A DNA stretch of 64,000 nucleotides. It comes from Klebsormidium nitens. Lineage: Eukaryota; Plantae; Klebsormidiophyceae. The stretch lies in assembly GCA_000708835.1 (NCBI GenBank), contig DF237165.1:1-64000 (forward strand), written 5' to 3'. A program made the position numbers and the translations under genes. This document shows positions 27,721-64,000 of this stretch, piece by piece. The first letter of the stretch is position 1. Every line of letters starts with the position of its first letter. The notes under the pieces were generated by a model, which worked only from the letters and a program-made list of their open reading frames with translations, searched no databases and was not told the origin of the DNA.

Positions 27721-27907
27721 GCCACGTGGCATCACGTGGCCGAAGGTGTTTTTGAATCTTGCCTCTGCCCACAAGGACCTCGAACGAGCGGTGCATACAT
27801 AACCTAGCGTTCTGCCCTTCGTCTTTCAGCGGATCGATCCGGGGCGCCCCCCGGCCCAGGGGCAGGACCTCTGTCCAGGGGTGCTCCACGGAGCTCCCCC
27901 GGAACAA
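27721..27907 (+). repeat. Structured element family copy A: G-box 27721, GCCCAC 27767, TACATAA 27796, 66-nt core 27838-27903
   Basis: Core TCCGGGGCGCCCCCCGGCCCAGGGGCAGGACCTCTGTCCAGGGGTGCTCCACGGAGCTCCCCCGGA is identical to copy B and 65/66 identical to copy C. Confidence 0.9.
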
Positions 27908-28563
27908 TTCAGCACCGCCCTCAACCCTACTCCCTCCTCTAGCACCAACTTTTAACCCAACAACAGCACAATCCAAAACCAACCAAATTCTGAACAAACC
28001 CAATCGAACCAACAACCAACCAGCATCACTTCTTCCCCAGCCAGAGGGGTCTGCTTTTAATCATAACACATGAACCTATTCTGTGGTAACCGCAAAGCGG
28101 TTTTGTTCAGAACCAATGCAGATTACGAGCATACTCCTCACCTCGTTAGCAAAAATGACGGATTCGACAACCTTCACAGGTCAGGTAGAACAGCGCTTGT
28201 ACTCTAAGGTGCTGGAATCGATTGTTCCATGTTCGAGTTTGCCAGAGCATGCACATTCTGGTACGTCTTGAACAAAACCACATGCATGACGCCGAAAGCA
28301 GCTAACTTATTAGTTGTTCATCTCCAAATGACGGTTCGCCAGACATCTTGTTCAGCCAAACGCAGAATTGACTGGAAACATGCGCTTCTTTGAGAAGTTT
28401 GAGCAGGTTCAGTTGTATGGATGACAAGTGAGTGTGTGACGTTGGGGTTGAAGCATGAGAGGTTTGCGAAATGTGAGTTTGTTGTAATGAATGTAGGCGA
28501 GGTTTGGGAGGTGGGTGTTTGATTTAGTGATCTGTTTGGGGGGTAAGTTGTGTGATGGGTTGT

Positions 28564-28749
28564 TCCGGGGGAGCTCCGTGGAGCACCCCTGGACAGAGGT
28601 CCTGCCCCTGGGCCGGGGGGCGCCCCGGATCGATCCGCTGAAAGACGAGGGCAGGAACTCTGCCTTATATACACCCTGATTGTCTCCATTATCTGTGGGC
28701 CGGCCCAGAACGAACGGCCACTTCCTACCGCTCGATATTGCCACGTGGC
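28564..28749 (-). repeat. Structured element family copy B (core 28564-28629, TATATAA 28671-28665, GCCCAC 28700, G-box 28740-28749)
   Basis: Exact reverse complement of the copy A core, with the same GCCCAC-to-TATA spacing of 29 nt. Confidence 0.9.
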
Positions 28750-29645
28750 TTTCATCGGACGGTTCTGAGACAATTACGCGAAAGCGGACGCGCCTTGCGG
28801 CACATCGTCCGCTTCGCGCTGGAGGCAAGCTGTCCAAAGCAGGGAAGTGAAACCGGCCCTTCAGATATAGAACGCGGAATCAAGAAACTGTTCTCTTGCT
28901 CTAAGATTCCTCTTCGCCGGAGCCTCCTGTCAAAGTGCGCGGACGAATGGATCCGGGCTTGCTGCAACCCTTCTTGAGCCTCTTGTGGCGCCGATATTGG
29001 TAGAGCCCACATGGGCGACTGACTTGCTCGGAAGCGAATCGCTAAGGACCATCTTTTCGACGTATAATACAGTGAGCATAGGGGACTATACTTTTAATGA
29101 AAGCTCCTAACCAGTATCCTTGGTTCGACAGCTTGCATAGATAGATACGAGTCATGCGTGCACATGTAAGATTGCCCATGTCTCGAAATGATCTTGCATA
29201 GATCTTGCATAGCAGGAGTTCCAGCCTTTGGCGGAAAGAACAAGCTCAGAAGAAAGCGCACTTGCTTCTTCGATCTGATAACCTTTTTCTAGTGTCAGCG
29301 TGTGCGTTTTGGAACCAGGAATTTACTAAGGTACGAGAGCCGCTCACTGAGAGTCACTCAAAGTGAGAGCCGCTCACGATAGTCACTCGCCTCACGTGAG
29401 TCACTCTGGTCACGCGGCTCTCGTGAGCCGCTAGTGCGCAGTATTGCCCGAATCTTTGCTCTTTATGGCCAGTGAGCAGTACATGTTGGCTCACGGATTC
29501 AATTGGAGCCGGCTCTCGATTGATCATCGGTTCATGCAGGTTCAATCGACGGTCGAAATCTGATGTGACCACTGACCCACAGATACTGATTTCTTGGAAT
29601 AGGCGTAATATAATCAGAAACCACGTACGAAGGTTCACCTTACGT

Positions 29646-29898
29646 GGGGCTGTAGCTTAATCGGTAAAGCGCCAAACCGCCGGTTCAAGAAACCGGCCCG
29701 TGGTCACAATGACCTCGAGGGGCCGCTTTCCCTTCTAGGGGGGTGATCCCTTGGCGGCACGGAGCTTGTCAAGCTCCGCGCTGCCTGCCGGGCCCCAGTG
29801 GTCCGGAGCCCGCGCGAAGCTCAGGAGTCCTCAGGAGGTTCCTGAAAGGTTCCTCCTGAGGAAGTTGAGAGATGCGGGTTCGAGCCCCGCCAGCTCCA
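29646..29898 (+). ncRNA. 253-nt tRNA-framed structured RNA (Ala-type acceptor stem, D arm and T arm; large multi-helix insert replacing the anticodon/variable arms)
   Basis: Acceptor GGGGCTG/CAGCTCC-A with G3.U70 and A73. D arm GCTT-AATCGGTA-AAGC. T arm GCGGG-TTCGAGC-CCCGC (29874-29890). A box 29653-29664, B box 29877-29886, upstream TAATATAAT 29606-29614 and T5 run 6 nt downstream. Confidence 0.75.
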
Positions 29899-29903
29899 AG
29901 ATG

Positions 29904-29908
29904 TTTTT
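29904..29908 (+). terminator. Probable RNA polymerase III terminator (T5)
   Basis: TTTTT begins 6 nt after the discriminator base of the tRNA-framed RNA. Confidence 0.6.
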
Positions 29909-30007
29909 CTTGACCCCTGCTGTCCAGTGCAATTCACTTATCTCTGAAATTGTCATCAAACCTAGCGTCAACTCATCATCTGAGTGATTGTCCTGAATAT
30001 GCACCAA

Positions 30008-30047
30008 CTTGCATACGTACCTAGTTCGTCCTAGGTACGTATGCAAG
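30008..30047. repeat. Perfect 17-bp inverted repeat with a 6-nt loop
   Basis: CTTGCATACGTACCTAG-TTCGTC-CTAGGTACGTATGCAAG. Confidence 0.9.
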
Positions 30048-32251
30048 CTGGCAAGCTAACTATGCGCCGTCGGCCGTCTGCGCACACGCAAGAGGCACGT
30101 GGCCATTAGGTGAGTGCGCCGGAGGACCAATAAGCTGACAAGGTTCCGTCAGCCAGGAGTTTCAATGCCACCAGATTGAGATTGTTGTTTTTCTTTTCAT
30201 GAACTGACCCCTTTGATTGGAAAAGTCAAGACGAGGGAAAACATGTTCGCGAATTTTTATGGAATAACAGCTCAAAAGGGGCACGTATATAGATCCACAG
30301 AGCGAGAAGCAAAAGCAGAGCTCGTGCCGAACGGATCCCCCAGAAGGTCTCGCCAGAGGTCCAAAGGCCCCCATCAATGGAGGATCTTCATAAAGGAGAA
30401 ATGTTTGTCTGAAATAAAACTTGCTCAAATCTGTAGAATGGAAGCTCCCAATCTTCGCGCCCGCTCATCTCCCTGACCTGCAAATAATCTCCGGTAGAGG
30501 GGGTAAGCTTCCGCTCCTCCGATCAAACCTTCTCTAGATGCTTCAAACACGCATTGAAGACGCCTATCTGCATTTCTTCGTTGGACCTATCGCATAAAAC
30601 AGCCGTCAAGGAAGAATAGAACGAGCGGGCTCGGTAACTTCCTCTGTGCAGAGGCGCGGACTCCAGGGCTGTTGATGATCTTCCTCAAGAACCGGTCCAA
30701 TCTCATGGCCTCAAGGAAGAGCAAGCTCCTGCTCTATATCAAGACGCCCATATACAGAGGTTCAACCCCTCTGCACGAATAGGCTGGTCATGTGGTGGTT
30801 GAATGTGTTCAAAGCAAGCTGCATCTACAAACTTCGCATATGGGATCCGGAAAAGGCTCTCCGTGGCCGCAGTTGCCGAGCGCTGTTTCGACGAGCACAA
30901 CGACATGAACGTCGCAGCGGAGATTGGCGAGGCGAGCGCTCAGCAGGGGAAAGATGGGAGGCCGAGATAAAGCAGGCCGTCTTCATTGGGTCTTCCTGGT
31001 TGCAACGGGAAGGGGGTGCAAGGGACATGGAGTCAAATCGAATGGCGAGCGGAGTAAAGGCACCCTCTGAGAACAGGAAAGTGAGGCGGGCAGAAGAGAG
31101 CGAATGTCTTCGCTCTATTCTAGTTGTTGAGACGGTCTTTCATTTCAGCGGTCGCCGTTTCCGGATTTAGCATGCTGCCTGGATGTGTGACCACAGCGGG
31201 CAGCCTAGCTGCAACGGGCCGAGCAGGCAAGTCAGCCGCCTTATGTGCTGTGGATGATAAGAGAGAGTCCCGATAGAATCTTTAAGCGAGCTCCGACAGA
31301 AGAAACCTAGAGACGGCTTCAAAAGAAAGCCCAACTGCCAGCTCACGCAGTATCGAAGCTAACCGTCACCTGTTTCAAACACCACCCCGGGAACACCACA
31401 AGATGAAGTTCAAATCGAGCACTGACGCAGAAGTGTCTGTCCTCCTTCTTTGGGAGTGTCTTCTGCTGCATACTCTAGCCTGCCTATAATCTGGTCGGGA
31501 AGGACGGGCCAGAATAGAGTAAAAGCGGGCAAGATGGAGCGTCCAAATGAGGAGCGTGTTTGCGGCTTCGCATATTTTTGAACCGAAAGCGTCCTTCCTT
31601 GAAAAGCAGAGTCCTTTCGTGGGCAATCAGTTGGTGCGCAAGCTGACTTTGACCAGAGCTCTCGACGCGCAGCTTCTGGTGGCGCTCTATCGCGCCTCTC
31701 TAGCTACCAGAGCAACCGAATCGCAGACAAGGGGGGGTGAAAACCGGAAAATCATGCTTACAAGGAGCAAAGTTTTTCGAGATCGTGGAGAGTGTGGGCT
31801 CCGAGTCTCGCCTACCGCTTTTGATGCCCGCATTTAGTTACAGTGAGCACCTGCGACTTCGTCCAGTACTTCAAGCTTTTTCGAGATGAATAGGCTCATA
31901 AGTAACATCAGACTCTGAGGTTGAAACCTCTTTTATCGGTGCAAATGAAGACCGTATCAAACAGCAGTTCTCTTTCTCATATATCATAGACTTAGAGCCA
32001 GAGCTTGGCAGCGCTGAGTTACATCATTGAAGGTCATGCATTGCTACAAGTAGGTGCCTGAGACCCAACCAGATTCCGAGTGGCCGGCGAAGAGTCATGC
32101 GTGGAGACAGAGTCAGCCTGACAAAGTCTGTAGGTACACTGTTCCGATCAACCTTTCTCAGCTTCCAAGCGGCCGCAGCCGACTCGTGTCTTTGGTGGGC
32201 ACGCGGCACGTTGCCGCGGAAGTACGGCCTTCCATGGAAGCCGTCTGATGT

Positions 32252-32446
32252 GCCACGTGGAACCATCGGACGGGTCGCACTCGATTTGGGTTGCAGGCGG
32301 AGTCCGCCCACAAAGAAATTGGAAAGGCAGCGCATGCATAAGGCAGCTTTCTGCTCCTGGTTTATCAGTGGACCGATCCGGGGCGCCCCCCGGCCCAGGG
32401 GCAGGCCCTCTGTCCAGGGGTGCTCCACGGAGCTCCCCCGGAACAA
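32252..32446 (+). repeat. Structured element family copy C (G-box 32252, GCCCAC 32306, TGCATAA 32335, core 32377-32442)
   Basis: One substitution versus the A/B core, the same 29-nt GCCCAC-TATA spacing, and a G-poor C/A-rich tail. Confidence 0.9.
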
Positions 32447-33353
32447 CCCTTCCCCAAACCATTCAGCCACTTCCTACTTCACTCAACCGCCACCTCATCA
32501 ATTGCCACCACTCCTTCCCTTCTTCAATCGCCCCGTATCACCCGCTACCACAACAACCCAAACACCTCATGTATCCAAGAACCACCAATTAAATTTCTTC
32601 TCAAATTATCCCGTATGTGAATGATGCTTTTACGCAGATGGACAAGCCGCGTGCTCGCGTGACATGTGGGTTTGTTCAAAGCTGTTCCTTGCTTATGTCA
32701 ATGCGACATTCAATTAACGTGGAAGTTGTCAATGAGCAATCGTGACAAATCCTTTGGCAAGCAAACGTCTGGCATGCTTGCACTTCACCTCCGGTCCTGA
32801 TAAAATCACCACCGTCTATATAAACGTCTGATTAGGTCTGCTTCCAGCGGTCAATCGATGCACTTTCGGTTTGGAGCTACACAACGACCAAGGGATGGAC
32901 AGATCGATAACAAACAACCACGGCTAGCAGCCGCGACTTCTTTTGCGAGATTCCGCACACTTATATCGGATTTGTTCATGGACGACGTCAATTCTACAAA
33001 AACGGACCGATCCGTCATGAAGGGCTCAGATGACGAGCTTCGATAAGGCTGCACGAAATCGAGATTTTAGATACAGAATTGTCAGACACCTTTCTAAGGA
33101 CAAAGCACCATCTAATCGTACATACAAAGGACCTCGGCCTGATTGGGCGCTCGGCGCGTGCTTTGGCGGAAGTTTCTGCCTTTGATCAGCGGAGCTCTAA
33201 TCGTACCTTAGTGCAACGTTAATCAGGTCATGATCAAGGTTGGCAAGATCTTATGTGGCCAAGAATTCGATGGTGATTTGCAAAAGCTAACCCTTTGAGG
33301 GGTTGATTTGGGGGAGGGGGGAAATCTGGCGGGATTTGAATTGTACACACCTT

Positions 33354-33513
33354 TCCGGGGGAGCTCTCGAGCTCGTGGAAAAACTCCATACAGAGGTCGG
33401 CCTGCCTCTGGAGCGGGGGGCGCCCCGGATCGCTCCACTAAAAGATGAGGGCCAGAACGCTGCGACCGTGAATTTTCAGAAACCCCTTTTAGCCGCCCAT
33501 GCTGCCACGTGGC
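33354..33513 (-). repeat. Structured element family copy D (diverged; core 33354-33429, G-box near 33504)
   Basis: Retains the TCCGGGGCGCCCCCC 5' end, the GAGCTCCCCCGGA 3' end and the CAGAGG/CCTCTG helix. Confidence 0.75.
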
Positions 33514-34120
33514 GATCAGCGAGTGACTATTCTGAACGAGGGTGTCAGGAAGCAGACGGCCGCACCACTTCCCGGCATGAGTTCGTACACGCGACTCTCT
33601 GTCAGTATCACTTCTCAGCAGTTCCCCAAAATCATACTGTCTGGATAGAACAGCTTGCCGAACTCTGCATGACAAGCAGGTTAGCTGCAAATCACTCCAC
33701 CCGTTCTCCATGCATCCGCAGAGCATTTCCAGAAAAACGAGCGCCGGAAACCTCTTCTTTTAATCTACCTGCGCATGGTATGCATGAAATTTCAGTACGT
33801 TCATGCAGTACGGGACCGGATCAACTTGTCGTGACTTGCTCCACAGTCCCGCGCTCCCCCCGTGGCACTTTTCCCCTTCTTGGTTGCACTATTGGTCGGT
33901 CCTCGCGCGATAAGAGCTCCGCTTGGATTTTAGCTTTTGCCAGCCCTTTCTCTCTTTCGAATTGTTTCGTTATCTCGCTCGGCAGTGTGATCCAATTTGC
34001 ACCTTTAGACGACCGCGTGGCAGTGCCGACGGCCACATTAGTCCAGAAGTCAAATCAATCAGTTGAGCCCAAAATTTTCAAACTGAAACGTAAGCCTTCG
34101 GATACTGCTTTCCGCATCGA

Positions 34121-34183
34121 CTCTGGGTGCCCGTTCCTCTCAGAGGGAGAACCTCTGTCCAAGGGTGCTGATCTGCGAAGCTC
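34121..34183 (+). repeat. Structured element family copy E (degenerate, partial)
   Basis: CAGAGG-GAGAA-CCTCTG-TCCAAGGGTGCT...AGCTC aligns to the central core. Confidence 0.55.
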
Positions 34184-35401
34184 AACGCCCTAAGAATATA
34201 GGCATGTCCCCCTCTAGCGCGTGTCTTACAACAAGTTCTGTTGAAATTTTGCTTCATCAAGGCTCTTTGCTTTGCTTTGATGAATCAAAAGGGTTGCAAT
34301 CGTATCCGCGTCAGACAGACCATCATGTGACTGGTCACTCGAGCACTTGCCGATCGTGATTTGCTTGCAAAGTGCGACATCGAGGCGGTGAGGACGGTCT
34401 CTGGCTTACAGTGCAGACGCTCGAGTGGAGGTGCTTCTAAAGCCCGCACCTTGTGTATCTACGAAGGTCTGAAGTCTTTTTCAAGTACCGCTTGCAGAAT
34501 GCATTGGCGGCGGCAACATTGTATCCAGTTGAGCGAGCGCAGTCCTTCTTCAGTGCATGATGAAGCTTGTCTCGGAGTTGACCCAACACGTCAAATTCCC
34601 AGTGTTAGCCTTCCCCTTTCCAGTGCAGGACGAGATGACTATGTGTGCAACTCCCTTCACATTGTTTCGAAAACTCAAAGACGAACATGTGTGAATATTC
34701 AGAATTTCAAACCATGATTATAAAAAGATCGCGACTAGTCGAATAATTGAGAGGGAGGTTGATCAACATTCAAAGTAGGGGTGATTGATACGTTGTGAGA
34801 CAATTGATCGTGTTTGCGCGCGGTCTGCTCTTTGAAAGTGCAGTCCTTACTGTTCCATACTGATCAGTATTCGTTGTCGTTTGCCGACGAATGATTGATG
34901 AAACATAGTTGTAAATGGCCTTTCCGGCCACATTTGTTCATGTAGGTTGTAATATTATGGAATGGGCGTAAAAGCATTTATTGATGCAGACTTTTGCTAA
35001 GAGCGGCTCGAAACTGATCTCACAAGATTCCTCCTTGGGGACGAAGCATTTATTAGCGCCATTGAAGCAAGACATGGCGTTTACTGTCAGTATGTTTACA
35101 CTTGCGCGCAAGAGATTGTCCATTCCTAAACCTACTTCCAAACCTCACTACTCTACGACGCAGATTTTCAGGGAGTAAGGATGCAGTGTTCGATGGACAA
35201 AATTGCATCCCCGCTCAATCAATATTGGTAGTCAGTTATCTACCCCGTTATATACAATCTTCTGCTTTACTACTACTTTCCCGTCAATTTGACGAGGTCA
35301 AGACGCGAAGAATGCGAGAACCAGGAACCCATCTCCTCTCTCGAGAAGCGGCCTGGCAAGACCCTCTAGTTAACACCTAGCTGGGGCCGACCGTACTTTG
35401 C

Positions 35402-38400
35402 TCAGTTTGCCAGCATGGCAGGGGAGGGGAAATGGTCCATGTCGAAGAACGGGCTCAAGCCGTCAATCGCCTCTGGGCATTCCAGGCTCTGTGCGTAGTG
35501 CTGGAGCGCGGCCGCGGCCGCGAACACCTCGTCGTCGCTCAGGTTGTTGACGAAACGCGCCCCGCCGATACCGCTCATCAGCGGCACCCGCTGCAGGCCA
35601 TCGCGCGCGATAGTCATATCGCGGAGCCCCTGCATAAGAAGCAACATTTCTCCACGTTAGTCCAACTATTAGACTACAGCGCCTCCGTTCGGACAACCAA
35701 ACCGACGACGGACGGACACATAGTAGGAGCTCTGATACAAAACGATCGTGGTCCTAGCCGAAGAGCGCGTCAAAACACATCTTCACTCCGCACGTGAACG
35801 TGAAGCAGAAAGCCTGTCGAGACCTTCACTTCATAGTCACCAGCGGATTCAGTAATCGAAGGGCCACAAAAACAGTGTGCGCGCACCTTGATCAGCAGTT
35901 TCGGGGTGACGGAGGCGTGCCAGAAGGGCAGCCGAAGCGCGCGCATGATGGCGAACACGCGGCGCTTGTGGTCGGCCGTGATGTAGCCGCGCCGGTGGGC
36001 GATTTCGGTGGTGAGCGCCATGTCGATGTTGACCGCCTCGCCGTGCAGCAGTTCGTCGTTGGTCTCTAGCGCCGCCATCTCAATTTCGGGGGAGAACGTA
36101 TGGCCGTAGTCGACGACACGTGTCAGCACGTGCTCGTACAAGTTGCACTCGAGCTCCTCCAGCATACCCTGGATGGACCGCCGCAGCACAAGGCGCGCAG
36201 CGGGCGTCTGCACGGGAATACGATTGTGGTTAGATACAAGCCACTTGGTTGACACTTCACAAGCCGGGTTGTTGGTTATGGTGTTTGCACCGCACACAAA
36301 GATTTCGCCACATTATCACTCATCCTAAGCAACTCCGAGGACCTATCCTCGTCAAGCTTGAAAGGATCGTCGAAGTTCGCTGAGTGGATGCCGAAAAGGC
36401 GAGGCAGACCTACGCCATTAAATTCGAAATCTGCACCATGAAGGCAGCATTCGCCAGAACGTTATATGCGATAATCCAGCTTATCTGTCTTCGTCCCATA
36501 TTGCCTCACCTGGAATCTGGACGCAATGAGCTGCGCCGAGTGCTGCTCGAGCATGTGGAAGAGCGGCGCGTCCTTAATGGCGGCCATCTTCAGAATCTCC
36601 GCGGCGCCGTTGCTGAGGTGGCGGTCGTCCAGCGTTTTCAGGAACGCGCGGTCGTAAAACACACCGAGCGGCGGGCAGTATGTGCCCAGCTTGTTCTTCT
36701 TGTTGTGGAAGTTGACAGCAGTCTTCACGCCGATCGACGCGTCGACAACGGCCATCAGAGTGGTCGGGATCTGCCCAAATTGTGGAGTAACGTCAGCTAA
36801 CCGTCGAGGATCGGTGAATCCTAGTGTACCGTTCACACCGTTCCGGTGAATCCTAGTGTACCGTTCACACCGTTCCCGTTCAGTCGCAGATCTGGCGGCT
36901 TCTTGCTCGGCGACGGATACAAAGGAAATGATAATGAAGACAAGGATTTGGGTGACAGGGATCGAGTCCGCCTGCTCCCGAAGACACATGCAACTGTTAC
37001 GCCCAGACCTTTGTAGTAAGCGAAGGCCGAACTCTCATGAACCGAAGGCCAACAATTCCCAAAAAGGAGCAGACCATTGACATGCTTGCTTATGATCCCC
37101 ACCTTAATGACGGGTGTGTTTCGTCGGTACAGGTTCGCCGCCAGCCCCACGACGTCCAAACACACCCCACCTCCGATGGCAATCAGTGGCTCCCGTCGCC
37201 TGGGTCAAACGGAAGGGGCTCAGCCTCTGGCAAAGAGGGCGTTATCAGTCGAAAGGCCGTGACTTGCACAATCACAAACTTACGTACATAATCATCAATC
37301 GCCTCGAAACATGCTATGCAAGTACATCGCGATGTTAGTAACACTCGTCAAGCAGACTACATCTCGTAGATATCCTCATACCTGTGCAGTTTGAAGTCCT
37401 CAATCTGCTGAGCAACCTCGAACACGAGGTCGAAGCTCTTGTTGGCCTCGCAGAACGGCAGCTGGATGATCTTGCTCTCTACCCGGTGGTGCTCCAAGTA
37501 CTGCACCATCACATATTTACGGTCAATCATAGGGTCATCAACAGTTGCCAACTTAAGACATAGTCATCCAGAAAGCACGAACTGAGAACCTGACTGAGAT
37601 CAAACAACTGATATTGATGAGTATAGTCTCTAACTCAGACCAATCTTATGAAGTTGGACAATTAACAACCAGCCAAAGTGCACTGTTGATGACCAGAGTG
37701 CACTGTTCATGACAACCCATCAGAATTGTGCGAGTCTGACTTCACAGCGAAGGGACTGATGCACAGGAAATACCAACTTCTGCGCACCTTGTCTAGCTTG
37801 GCACCGTGCAACCGGTACCAGTTCTCATCAACAACCAGCAGTCTTCTCAGCTGCTTGCCAGCACTCCTGGTGTAAGGGGCCACCTGGGGCGGGAACGTGT
37901 TGGGCACGATGCCTGACAGCAAGGCCTGGACAAAGAGGGGGTCAATTAGTGTGGCGACGCGAGGGTTGTCAGACCTGTTGTTGAACAATAATGTACCTCT
38001 CTGTATGTCTTGAACACAGGTCTGCCTTTCCTGTGTCTGTTCACAGTGCTAATCACAGGATTCACAGTGTTGATCACACTGGATTCACGGCGCTAGTCAC
38101 CGGATTGCAGCGGCAATGGTGACTTCCAAGCACATGAGTAAGCTGTGAACCAATCACTGAACATTGTGATGAGGACAGCAGAATGACAGGTTAGTGAACA
38201 TTGCTTACCATGTTGGAAGGGTTGAGGAGATCCTCGCACTCCTCTACGCTATACATGATGGGCTGGGTTGCCTGGACCGTAAATTTTCCCTGGAAACAAA
38301 AAAGATCTGTTGAGCACGTGTCTGCATGCACTAGCTGTTCATATGCAGAACTTGTGCCAACTCCCTTCCAGAGATGCTCTCAGCAACAAAATTACAATGT

Positions 38401-52363: not shown

Positions 52364-52721
52364 GGGTATTTTGAGGAGAGAGCCTGCTTCTAAGAACATC
52401 TTTTGGAGGTTATTAAGTGGCAGAGTTCGCACAAAGACGGCAGAGAGGTAGGAGTACATCGAGGAATCGCAAGACAGATTCATACCCAATCGTCGGGGGA
52501 CTGCACAATAGATAAGAGCTCGATATCGGTCTCGGTATCGTGGAGACTCAGTTTTTCCTTGAGTAGACGTGGTGCAGAAATGCATTTGCAACTGATTGCG
52601 GAACTATCGATCATGCAGGACTTGATTAACTCGGTCGCAGAATAATCAATCCGTCTCCTATGAAGTCATGTTCCAAAGCAGAAGTGCTTCGTCGTTGTTC
52701 ACACAGTACCACTTCACGCGT

Positions 52722-52925
52722 ATGCCCAAGTTCTGGACGAACATGCATGGTCACGAACATTTCACACAACTGAGCTCAAAATATATTCGTGGCTGGGCTT
52801 TCATACGTGCGGGTGTAACACATACACTACGTCTTCATGTAAATGCCCAAGTTCTTGACAAACATGTCACGAACTTGTCACACATCAGCTGAAACACATC
52901 CGTGGCTGGGCTTGCACATGTGCGT
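52722..52925. repeat. Imperfect ~121-bp-period duplication between convergent genes
   Basis: ATGCCCAAGTTCT(G/T)GAC(G/A)AACATG at 52722 and 52843; CGTGGCTGGGCTT at 52788 and 52901. Confidence 0.8.
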
Positions 52926-61903: not shown

Positions 61904-63623
61904 CTGCGAACAACTGCGTGACGGTACGGTCGAAAGTTTTGAGGGCTGTTGGAGCGGGGACGGTTCGATTGCTTGGAATCGAGGGGTTAAGCGAACGCGG
62001 TTGAGGGTAGACTAGGGGGGCCTGACTGTGACTCTTGTGTGATGGATAGTGAACGAAGATCCAGGACGTCAACTGTAGGGGAGTCGAACAAGCCAGGTGT
62101 CCGTTAGGCGATTGATTCGTCGGAGGGAGAGCGCCGAAAAGAACTTTTACTTGTGAAGAATTTTATTCAGGCACGTGTTGATGGAAGTCAAAAGTAAGAC
62201 GAGGACCGACAGCCTGCCAATTCCTGGGTCCCCGCTGAGGTCATTAGCCTGCGGACATGTGCCTTATTTTTGCCGTGACATCTAGTGAACGACGGGCCCT
62301 CCTTGAGTGCGTCACCGACATCGGATATCGCGTTATTGCTTTTCTTTCTATTTGATGCACGTTCTCATGACATGAAGCATCGACTTGGTGCTGCTACATA
62401 TCTTGAACCGTAGTTAGAGCGGTCAAGTAGGACGGAACCGTACTGGAAAAATGTGTCACTTGTACCATACGAAACGTACTGAAACTTAAAGCGGCAGCTT
62501 TTTTTCATGACGCTGCCGCTCTGAAATGGGTACATCCCTTTGCCATGGCCATTATGCCCTGATGCCCTAGTTGACGCGCTTTTTTCCTTATGTCTGCGTG
62601 AATGCCTGAATGAAATGCATAATCGCCACAAGTGACGGGCTAGTAACCTGCAACGACCTGCTTTACTGCTGAACAGAAGCTTGTTTTTTACATGTTGTAT
62701 ATCTCTGTGATCGATGTGACTTCAAAAACACAAATTCTAGATGGCCGGAAGGAGCAGCTCCAAACTGAGCTGTCTGCGCCAGGTGGTTCCAAAACTTGCC
62801 TCGATCCTTTATCAATTGTGTGAATGGAAATCAAACTCGACGTCGTTGTTTTGAAGACGGCCCAGAAAGCCTACGACACACTTAAGCAACAATGTGCTGC
62901 TAGATAGAGTTGATTATCAATTTGTTCAACATATATATTCTACGACTCATGTGTACAATTTTCTGGGCTCCCTCAAGTGCTCCTTTGATTGCTTCACAAG
63001 CTAGCCATCCCAGGAGAGCCGGCTCCTGAGACTCCGAGGCGCCTGTTCAGGAAGCGGGCCTACTTCTGGCGATCATCAGCATGTGCGCATCCGGCAGTGC
63101 TGTGATCACAGCCATGGTATGTGCGAGGGCGCAAGACATGAGGATGCCCTCGTGATTGCACCGACTTCTTTGAGGATGACCGGCCTGCTAATTACGGCTT
63201 TGATTCAAACAATTCAGAGCTTGCATACGTTCTGTCCAATCGTGAGGGTCATGACTGAGTTGAACGGGAGACTAAAATTCTGGACACATAGAGGGCGCTG
63301 ATGGAAGTCGCACAGTGCTACACTTCCGACTCCGAAGTCGCGGAATCTGAGCACGAAGGTGCAGGCCTTTACGGCCTGCTAGACTCATTCGCTGCAGGAA
63401 CTAAATTTGGACCCTCACTCAATACGTGAAGAAAACGCTGCGGGCTCAGACTTGTGCGTTTCGTATCCGCCTTATACCTCCCTGCAATCAAGATCTTTGC
63501 CCTCACGCCTTCGCTTTTCGCATCCTCGCTCTCCGCCAACGGGGTTGACAACTTCTGATCGGAGACGCCGTGGCGAGCTGCTTCCGGTCCTCCAACTCGA
63601 GCGTAATCCTGAGCCGTCGATCT

Positions 63624-63890
63624 GCCACGTGGCATCATCGAAACGGCAGGACTCTTCTTTAGCAAGCTGGCCCACAAGAAACCCCCAGACTTTGAGGGTA
63701 TAAATGCAGACGCGGTTCCTCCGAGAGGCGCCGACGCCAGAGGCGTTTAAGGGACGGAGTCCCGAGTTCAGGGCTGAGCCCAGGGGGAAACCCGGCCGCC
63801 AGGGCAGAGCCCTGTTCAATGAGTGCCTCCTTCCCCAGGGCAGAGCCCTGTTCACACCAAATCTTCCCAAACGCACCAAACCACCACTGC
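63624..63890 (+). repeat. Distant member (F) of the structured element family
   Basis: G-box 63624, GCCCAC 63670 (46 nt after the G-box, as in copy A), TATAAAT 63699 (29 nt after GCCCAC), two CAGGGC-AGA-GCCCTG-TTCA hairpins and a C/A-rich tail. Confidence 0.65.
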
Positions 63891-64000
63891 CCTTCGACTC
63901 ATCCCTTATTCATGTGTACACGGCCCGCCTCACTACGTACAGGCAGCCCCCTGCACCATCCATGTCTTAAACTCGATGCGGAATTGAGAGTCTGTTCAAA

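Follow-up and report, generated by a model that had tools for sequence, protein, structure and literature searches.

Within a gene-free 6.5-kb stretch of the Klebsormidium nitens genome we identified five copies of a short unit, three of them intact (A, B and C) and two decayed (D and E); a sensitive HMM scan found no others in the window, by which we mean the whole 64-kb stretch of DNA analysed here. An EEVS-like exon neighbours the cluster; its best protein match, in Logan, is 84% identical. Units A (+), B (-) and C (+) share one order of elements: a G-box, the heptamer GCCCACA, a TATA-like box, a 69-nt GC-rich core and a G-poor tail. The G-box of unit A is perfect (GCCACGTGGC, 27721-27730), with a second box, ACGTGGC, behind it, so that the whole element spans 27721-27743; downstream lie the USE-like box GCCCACAAG (27767-27775), the TATA-like box TACATAAC (27796-27803, at +29 from the first nucleotide of GCCCACA), a predicted start site at the A of TCAGCGG near 27828, the core (27836-27904) and a G-depleted, C/A-rich tail (27905-28045), all on the forward strand. 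Unit B, on the reverse strand, comprises a G-box at 28740-28749, the USE-like box GCCCACAGA (28692-28700) and, at the TATA-like position, TATATAAG (28664-28671), these two together occupying 28664-28700, then the core (28563-28631) and a G-depleted tail at 28405-28562, which appears as a C-poor tract on the forward strand. In unit C, on the forward strand, the G-box (32252-32261) is set inside a palindrome, CCGTCTGATG...CATCGGACGG (32239-32271), and is followed by GCCCACAAA as the USE-like box (32306-32314) and TGCATAAG at the TATA-like position (32335-32342), both within 32306-32342, by the core (32375-32443) and by the G-depleted tail (32444-32616).

Units A and B form a convergent inverted pair, 636 nt apart, with arms of 104 nt at 96% identity. 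Units C and D form another, 991 nt apart, D being 74% identical to C, and the interiors of the two pairs are unrelated. Unit D (33341-33513, -) retains an intact G-box (33504-33513) and has lost both GCCCACA and the TATA box; its core (33353-33431) is about 76% identical and carries two insertions. The presence of unit E (34012-34204, +; decayed copy at 34085-34204) had been noted before, where it was taken for a fragment. It is instead a strongly decayed full-length copy, with remnants of the G-box (ACCGCGTGG, 34012) and of the USE (GCCCAAA, 34067), and the apical hairpin CAGAGG/CCTCTG (34141-34158) is its sole intact part. Traces of all the promoter motifs persist in E, so the promoter was part of the duplicated unit.

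Two further loci in the window bear on the cluster. Unit F (63612-63912, +) has the same promoter geometry and a different core: its G-box (63624-63633) lies in a palindrome, GCCCACAAG recurs at 63670 and TATAAATG stands at 63699, followed by a GC-rich hairpin domain at about 63725-63855 (fold z = -3.9) and a G-poor tail of about 60 nt. The domain contains two CAGGGC-AGA-GCCCTG-TTCA hairpins, similar to the apical hairpin of units A-E. The other locus, at 29576-29907 (+), is a tRNA-like gene that serves as a comparator and does not belong to the family. Its body (29646-29898) matches the Rfam tRNA model with 35.3 bits, while ARAGORN called no tRNA; it is preceded by CCCACAGAT at 29576, the same box as at the units, and by TATAA at 29609, and a T5 terminator (29903-29907) follows five nt past the gene end.

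Promoter motifs and their spacing

The perfect G-box GCCACGTGG is found at 6 loci in the 64-kb window (10 strand-wise matches, 0.75 expected), five of which are units A, B, C, D and F. In A-C it precedes GCCCACA by 46-54 nt. All 21 GCCCACA sites in the window were checked, and a TATA-like box at +29 was present at four of them only, namely those of A, B, C and F, each with a G-box upstream (4/4), exactly the arrangement that the preliminary description had proposed. F keeps the fixed +29 spacing too, with a spacer and a core that bear no relation to those of the other three. Of the palindromic arms said to flank the G-box, C has a clear pair, B and F a partial one, and A an arm on one side.

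Measured between elements, the USE-like and TATA boxes are separated by about 19-20 bp (29 nt start-to-start). In A, B, C and F alike, the extended box GCCCACA(A/G)(G/A) is positioned near -61 relative to the predicted start, and its CCCACA core alone matches the plant USE. Pairs of CCCAC(A/G) and TATA are confined in the window to these four units and the tRNA-like gene (5 observed, about 1 expected), the distance from CCCACA to TATA being 28 nt at the units and 33 at the Pol III-type tRNA-like gene, thus if anything shorter at the units, which leaves Pol III a possible polymerase. An independent tRNA-like gene, backed by Rfam and ending in a T5 terminator, has the GCCCACA-TATA geometry as well, which makes that geometry a plausible hallmark of small-RNA-type promoters in this alga.

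Uneven conservation, core fold and tails

Conservation within the units is strikingly uneven. A 31-mer of the core is matched exactly in A, B and C and with 3 mismatches in D (33401-33431, -), where chance predicts no match at all. Over 69 nt, the cores of A and B are identical (69/69) and C differs from either at one position (68/69), where 65-66/66 had been reported at the outset. By contrast, and again as anticipated, the spacers are unrelated: identity is 35-55% between USE and TATA and about 48% (gapped alignment) between G-box and USE, both near random. The stretch from TATA to core is 66-78% identical, the conserved block beginning about 30 nt 5' of the core, past the TATA box but ahead of the predicted start site, and the tails are about 35% identical, the level predicted by their composition. 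In the copies without GCCCACA and TATA boxes the cores have decayed, to 76% identity in D and less in E. Because motifs and core are kept, spacers are saturated and the promoter-less copies have decayed cores, this pattern fits a gene family under selection rather than the ends of transposons or LTRs. RNA-level selection alone does not usually keep 69 nt perfectly identical, however, which means that gene conversion or a role at the DNA level has to be assumed.

The fold proposed for the core, closed by TCCGGGG/CCCCGGA, is thermodynamically feasible, at -37.2 kcal/mol where the MFE is -38.4, but it is no more stable than folds of shuffled sequence (z = -0.4 to -0.6, about -0.5), and no diagnostic feature appeared when the full putative transcripts were folded. 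All 5 copies preserve the apical hairpin, with the G.U pair converted to A-U in D and E as previously noticed. The covariation expected of the fold did not emerge: no compensatory double change was seen in either fold model and the G.U to A-U change was the only one of its kind, in a test whose power is very low with five sequences of which three are near-identical. Extra matches to the hairpin motif at 30754 and 39944 have no family context and were taken as chance.

The tails are 130-150 nt long, shorter than the 150-200 nt initially estimated, and are indeed nearly G-free, C/A-rich and non-alignable. Across the whole 64 kb, on either strand, tracts with at most 6% G per 100 nt comprise these three tails only, and they invariably lie downstream, on the promoter's own strand. 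No 3'-end signal is shared downstream of the units: neither a T-run nor a 3' box, TGTAA or AATAAA occurs at a consistent distance, and a common 3' box resembling CA(N)3-10AGTNNAA was not found after the core. Counted from the predicted start, the first T4 run lies at +123 in A, +363 in B and +262 in C, and F has none within 270 nt. With Rfam 15, the tRNA-like gene was the only match over the window at gathering thresholds, and at E-values up to 10 the units returned noise only (E >= 0.55). The suggestion of a small-RNA gene family thus stands as regards the type of conservation, a conserved core beside saturated spacers; a discrete snRNA-like product of about 66 nt is not supported by fold, covariation, 3' end or Rfam. 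Neither the G-box nor a strand-specific G-depleted tail is a feature of snRNA genes, and together they therefore suggest a longer Pol II transcript, putatively of about 210-230 nt or more.

A putative family of non-coding RNA genes and its alternatives

To one reading we give about even chances: that putative ncRNA genes, paralogous and each with its own promoter, are clustered locally here, of which A-C would be intact and D-E pseudogene-like, with F as a divergent paralogue. The composite promoter of such a gene would consist of a G-box/ABRE-type palindrome, the USE-like GCCCACA and a TATA-like box fixed 29 nt after GCCCACA, and the G-box would place it under bZIP/bHLH-type control (light, ABA or stress). 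As the conserved stretch runs to an initiator-like TCA about 32 nt past the TATA box, Pol II would probably start there and produce a putative transcript of at least about 210-230 nt. Its first ~77 nt would form a GC-rich hairpin domain, kept identical across copies by selection and probably by gene conversion as well, in which the best-kept hairpin, CAGRGG-loop-CCTCTG followed by TCCA, would be the likeliest protein- or RNA-recognition element. The next 130-150 nt would be G-depleted, C/A-rich and essentially unstructured, their composition being conserved and their sequence not. No ORF or protein similarity is common to the regions downstream of the units, and no Pfam domain was detected in the flanking ORFs.

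The convergent inverted arrangement of A/B and C/D, at 636 and 991 nt and with unrelated interiors, recalls non-autonomous DNA transposons of Pack-MULE-like or foldback-like type, whose long terminal inverted repeats would enclose captured interiors, or else promoter-bearing solo LTRs; the family is multicopy and includes decayed members, and both LTRs and MULE TIRs are able to carry promoters. We nonetheless consider mobile-element remnants unlikely, and the transposon terminus or LTR that the preliminary description had kept as its alternative fits poorly. Sequence agreement is greatest at the inner end and declines towards the outside until only motifs remain, the opposite of what TIRs display; there is no sharp outer edge and no target-site duplication, the homology of A and B simply fading about 40 nt upstream of the G-box; and divergence is grossly non-uniform, F combining the same promoter geometry with a different core. 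Neither a transposase/RT ORF nor a Pfam match was found in the 8-kb region, and no gag ORF lies nearby. The five copies sit together within 6.5 kb, the rest of the 64 kb containing no other, and LTRs should stand in direct orientation, whereas the pairs seen here are inverted. The same topology could also mark inverted-repeat or natural-antisense loci, in which read-through from A into B would produce a 104-bp stem matched at 96%, or convergent transcripts would overlap, yielding dsRNA and siRNAs; the A/B arms and the like topology of C/D speak for it. This is very improbable in our view, since D is decayed and at 74% identity to C would make a poor C/D stem, E and F have no partner in reach inside the window, a complete selected promoter on each arm would be superfluous for a hairpin locus, and an inverted local duplication explains the topology without any function.

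Two other readings start from the promoter and the tail. The units could be the promoter and conserved 5' leader of an unannotated protein or peptide gene, the C/A tract being a plant-type 5'UTR and the hairpins a translational control element: G-box and TATA make an mRNA-type promoter, plant 5'UTRs are typically richer in C than in G, and in F an ATG at 63821 opens a frame that reaches the window end. Past the tails of A, B and C, however, the frame opened by the first ATG has only 45, 15 and 7 codons, respectively, and the three are mutually unrelated; tblastx between the downstream regions gave nothing below E = 0.02, the gap of about 340-690 nt between the tails of convergent partners is too small for two genes, and neither Pfam nor protein word searches on two core frames returned anything, which renders a coding leader improbable. 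Of similarly low probability are Pol III type-3 (USE+TATA) small-RNA genes, each yielding a discrete, structured RNA whose 3' end would come from termination at the first T-run or from processing at the junction of core and tail. In favour, the window's Pol III-type tRNA-like gene has the CCCACA-TATA geometry in front of it, the short spacing recalls that of Pol III-class snRNA genes of plants (PMC8287931), and the 3' end of the core (...CCCCGGA-ACA-A) would, as a slight hint, permit an H/ACA-like end. Against this, termination at the T4 runs would give products wildly unequal in length, in contrast to the tRNA-like gene with its adjacent T5, and G-boxes with a compositionally constrained tail of 140 nt are foreign to type-3 genes, to which may be added the failure to match Rfam even at E up to 10.

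Several specific identities were also considered and rejected. A hammerhead ribozyme around CTGATG and the G-box palindrome lacks the core motifs and an Rfam match. A spliced-leader RNA would need an Sm site, which is absent, and trans-splicing is not known from green plants. A telomerase RNA was rejected because the tail contains no permutation of CCCTAAAA. The resemblance to the A/B boxes of a tRNA-derived SINE is weak and comes with no Rfam tRNA signal, nothing beyond an ACA after the closing stem recalls an H/ACA RNA, and the likeness to a 7SK-like GAUC hairpin is a resemblance only.

Searches for relatives returned no matches outside the window in exact and gapped pattern scans of metagenome contigs, viral contigs and prokaryotic genomes, nor did protein word searches with sense and antisense frames through the core, and searches of the Klebsormidium literature on small RNA, snRNA, lncRNA and the G-box did not turn up such units. 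Taking the ncRNA-gene reading further, we tentatively entertain, at distinctly less than even likelihood, that they represent an undescribed class of independently transcribed, G-box-regulated ncRNA built in two parts, a 5' hairpin domain that does not vary, with CAGRGG-loop-CCTCTG-TCCA as its key hairpin, and a G-free, unstructured C/A-rich tail, and driven by a hybrid promoter that combines an mRNA-type stress/light element with the USE-like/TATA geometry of small-RNA genes; in this class A-C and F would be two subfamilies. The combination of an invariant 5' hairpin domain with a G-free tail would be a design without counterpart among catalogued RNA families. If transcribed, the units would constitute a lineage-specific regulatory RNA family in a streptophyte alga near land-plant ancestry, and their mixture of G-box and USE-like/TATA elements would bear on the evolution of plant snRNA-type promoters and of polymerase choice. 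If they are not transcribed, it would still have to be explained, for instance by gene conversion or a DNA-level function, why 69 nt are perfectly identical between flanks saturated with changes.

Comparison with known promoters and RNAs

The plant USE has the consensus RTCCCACATCG and is located some 60-70 nt 5' of the site where transcription starts. USE+TATA genes of plants include U1, U2, U4 and U5, transcribed by Pol II, and U6, U3, 7SL, MRP and telomerase RNA, transcribed by Pol III. The units resemble plant U-snRNA-type genes in having a CCCACA-containing box at a fixed distance from TATA, in being multicopy with a conserved (here, predicted) transcribed 5' part and diverged flanks, and in being accompanied by decayed, pseudogene-like copies. 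They differ in that the box reads GCCCACARR rather than RTCCCACATCG, and neither a T-run nor a 3' box follows the core, which has no matching Rfam family. In Arabidopsis, USE and TATA are 23-24 bp apart in Pol III genes and 32-34 bp apart in Pol II genes (PMC8287931); the 19-20 bp of the units falls outside both ranges, and the charophyte rule may differ. The units moreover add a perfect G-box and a G-depleted tail of 130-150 nt to the snRNA-type plan.

Monocot snRNA promoters possess extra MSP elements (RGCCCR) upstream of the canonical USE. The likeness to the units is that of a three-part promoter with a GCCC-containing element besides TATA, and GGCCCA is found in units B and F; in monocots, however, the MSP is separate from the USE, whereas the units have GCCCACA alone together with an upstream G-box. 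Among longer RNAs, Arabidopsis HID1 is a stem-loop-rich Pol II lncRNA of about 236 nt that acts in light signalling, is single-copy and is conserved among land plants. The units are multicopy, clustered and without known orthologues, and bear no sequence or structural relation to it. By analogy, the putative transcripts would nonetheless be like HID1 in expected size (about 200-250 nt), in being non-coding and hairpin-bearing, and in a plausible regulation by light or stress through the G-box.

Copies of the unit, their conservation and decay

The window consists of eukaryotic DNA with a G+C content of ~52%. No ORFs with Pfam domains were detected across ~24 to 35.7 kb, and the next recognisable gene beyond this stretch is a DHQS/EEVS-like gene on the minus strand (35.8-37 kb), whose EEVS-like exon reaches at most 84% identity with outside protein sequences. 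In or beside the region of this gene, a 32-nt unit, CGGTGAATCCTAGTGTACCGTTCACACCGTTC, is duplicated in perfect tandem (36812-36875). Two families of short direct repeats (46 nt and 33 nt; 78-82% identical) with a spacing of 113-121 nt at 52700-52924 suggest a local tandem duplication of ~120 nt.

Scanning of the window with a 31-mer from the GC-rich core returned exact matches at 27836, 28631 (minus strand) and 32375 and a match with three mismatches at 33431 (minus strand); chance alone would give none. The exact matches lie in the cores of the intact units A (27836-27904), B (28563-28631, minus strand) and C (32375-32443), the inexact one in the decayed copy D. An HMM derived from the copy alignment, searched over the 64 kb with filters off, recovered five copies only, namely A (+), B (-), C (+), D (-) and the likewise decayed E (+), all of them within 27.8-34.2 kb. 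The alignable block between copies spans only ~105-145 nt, and the interiors of the convergent inverted pairs A/B and C/D, as well as all flanks, are unrelated (BLASTN, short words). Taken together, these searches bear out the multi-copy element with a conserved core put forward in the preliminary description. Within the C/D interior (32818-32870, plus strand), TATATAAA precedes CAGCGGTCAATCGAT by 27 nt; the pair is similar to the stretch that leads from TATA box to start in the units, TTTCAGCGGATCGATCC, and may be a further, very decayed copy or a chance occurrence. Just outside unit B, a 13-bp inverted repeat (CGCGAAAGCGGACG...CGTCCGCTTCGCG; 28786-28826) is partly homologous to the sequence 5' of the G-box of unit A.

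Among A, B and C, the core is identical at 68-69 of 69 positions and the 32 nt from TATA box to core at 66-78%, whereas the 20-nt spacer between the USE-like (GCCCACA-containing) box and the TATA box is only 35-55% identical, in keeping with the unrelated spacers noted earlier. Identity is ~48% between G-box and USE-like box (gapped alignment) and ~35% in the tails, the chance level for their A/C-rich composition. Since spacers and tails have diverged to this extent, the duplicates must have been separate for long enough to saturate any unconstrained sequence with changes; despite this, A, B and C retain the core and, at conserved spacing, all three promoter boxes. Gene conversion was probably also needed for perfect identity over 69 nt.

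In unit D the G-box is intact, the GCCCACA and TATA boxes are gone (7-nt deletion), and the core is only ~76% identical, with two insertions. In unit E, both the G-box (ACCGCGTGG, 34012) and the USE-like box (GCCCAAA, 34067) are still recognisable in vestigial form, and decay of the core has spared only the apical hairpin. From these remnants it follows that the duplicated unit ran from G-box to core, and that loss of the promoter accompanies loss of the core, a pattern characteristic of gene families under selection that include pseudogenes.

The predicted RNA and the G-depleted tail

The predicted start is the A of TCAGCGG, ~32 nt 3' of the TATA box, giving an RNA that begins AGCGGAUCGAUCCGGGG. 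Transcripts initiating ~30 nt past each TATA box would begin near 27828, 28639, 32367 and 63731. Its minimum free energy (MFE) fold comprises three tandem hairpins (-38.4 kcal/mol). The closing-stem fold proposed earlier lies just 1.2 kcal/mol above the MFE, with a closing-stem probability of ~0.5; neither fold, however, is more stable than dinucleotide shuffles (z -0.4 to -0.6). The single observation in favour of the structure is that the apical hairpin is paired in 100% of cells of the five-copy alignment, which also confirms its G.U to A-U change in D and E. The covariation check by pair counts on this alignment found no compensatory double changes for either fold model, but with three of the five sequences near-identical the test has almost no power, and the structure is therefore neither backed nor refuted. 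In the divergent paralogue F (63612-63912, plus strand), the downstream domain differs from the A-C core and is packed with hairpins (z = -3.9), two of which, CAGGGC-AGA-GCCCTG-TTCA, resemble the A-C apical hairpin, CAGGGG-CAGGA-CCTCTG-TCCA.

3' of each intact core, the promoter strand is G-depleted for 130-150 nt (0-2 G per 30 nt), and apart from the tails of A, B and C, no 100-nt stretch on either strand of the window has <=6% G. The G-poor tail is ~60 nt long in F and almost absent in D. The three long tails have their composition in common, along with scraps of homology broken by indels (e.g. TTCAGC(A/C)C and TCAACC in A and C), and are not alignable. Because this compositional constraint is strand-specific and tied to promoter orientation, it argues that the tail belongs to the transcript, in which case the product would be ~210-230 nt or longer rather than the ~66 nt originally envisaged. 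No terminator or 3' box was found after the cores; the first T4 run lies at +123 (A), +363 (B) and +262 (C) from the predicted start, and F has none within 270 nt.

Alternative explanations and classification

In their inverted pairing around unrelated interiors, the units are reminiscent of Pack-MULE or foldback elements, and the preliminary description had offered a transposon terminus or LTR as its alternative. Yet the repeats are most alike at their inner ends and progressively less so towards the outside, homology between A and B is lost ~40 nt beyond the G-box with no target-site duplication, and neither a transposase nor an RT is encoded in the vicinity. The degree of divergence varies widely along the units, F has kept the promoter while its core is different, and the copies are clustered within the window rather than dispersed, all of which speaks against such an origin. 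Against the units being leaders of coding genes, the first ORFs past the tails (45, 15 and 7 codons) are unrelated, tblastx detects nothing common downstream, and the space between convergent partners is too small for two genes. The pairs might also be read as dsRNA or hairpin loci, as A/B would form a 104-bp stem of 96% identity; against this stand the decay of unit D and a selected promoter on each arm.

We file the units as a candidate family of independently promoted ncRNA genes with a USE-like/TATA promoter. No Rfam family matches them, no description of such units was found in the literature on Klebsormidium small RNAs, snRNA, lncRNA or G-box, and no relatives outside the window were detected among metagenome, viral contigs and prokaryotic genomes or by protein word searches. 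This putative family is unusual in its G-box, in a bipartite layout in which a G-free tail follows invariant hairpins, and in the convergent pairing.

Promoter geometry compared with plant snRNA genes

The sequence GCCACGTGG is strongly over-represented in the window (10 strand-wise matches against 0.75 expected) and marks units A, B, C, D and F. GCCCACA is present at 21 sites, but only those of A, B, C and F are accompanied by a TATA-like box at +29, and in these four units a G-box lies 46-54 nt upstream of GCCCACA. Unit F thus has the promoter geometry of A-C, its G-box lying within a palindrome, and a shared GTTCCTSC motif is located directly 3' of its TATA box. A relaxed scan of the whole window for CCCAC(A/G) followed 16-30 nt downstream by a TATA-like box yielded five sites against about one expected: those of A, B, C and F, and one upstream of a tRNA-like gene.

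This gene (29646-29898, plus strand; Rfam tRNA, 35.3 bits) is split by a ~180-nt insert of GC-rich hairpins and was not called by ARAGORN. It contains a B-box, is preceded by CCCACAGAT at 29576 and TATAA at 29609, and ends five nt before a T5 run (29903-29907); on these features it resembles a Pol III unit whose USE-like/TATA promoter is external. Short repeated motifs are densely clustered ~200 nt 5' of this gene (29320-29440: GAGCCGCTCAC twice plus one inverted copy, AGTCACTC three times, one CACGTG). A near-perfect palindrome with 14-bp arms (GCATACGTACCTAG...CTAGGTACGTATGC; 30005-30050) gave only weak miRNA-family noise in Rfam, and another G-box-like site, GGCACGTGGCC, lies at ~30094-30104.

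Since the CCCACA-TATA geometry also precedes this Pol III-type gene, it is plausibly a small-RNA-gene promoter of Klebsormidium nitens, which lends support to the earlier lead. The likeness to snRNA genes is partial: the box of the units has just CCCACA in common with the plant USE (RTCCCACATCG), and the USE-TATA gap is ~19-20 bp as compared to 23-24 or 32-34 bp in Arabidopsis (PMC8287931). Unlike plant snRNA genes, moreover, the units lack a downstream terminator or 3' box and carry an extra perfect G-box/ABRE palindrome upstream. In view of these differences from plant snRNA genes, we favour Pol II, with Pol III as a less likely candidate, for transcription of the units into a longer RNA.
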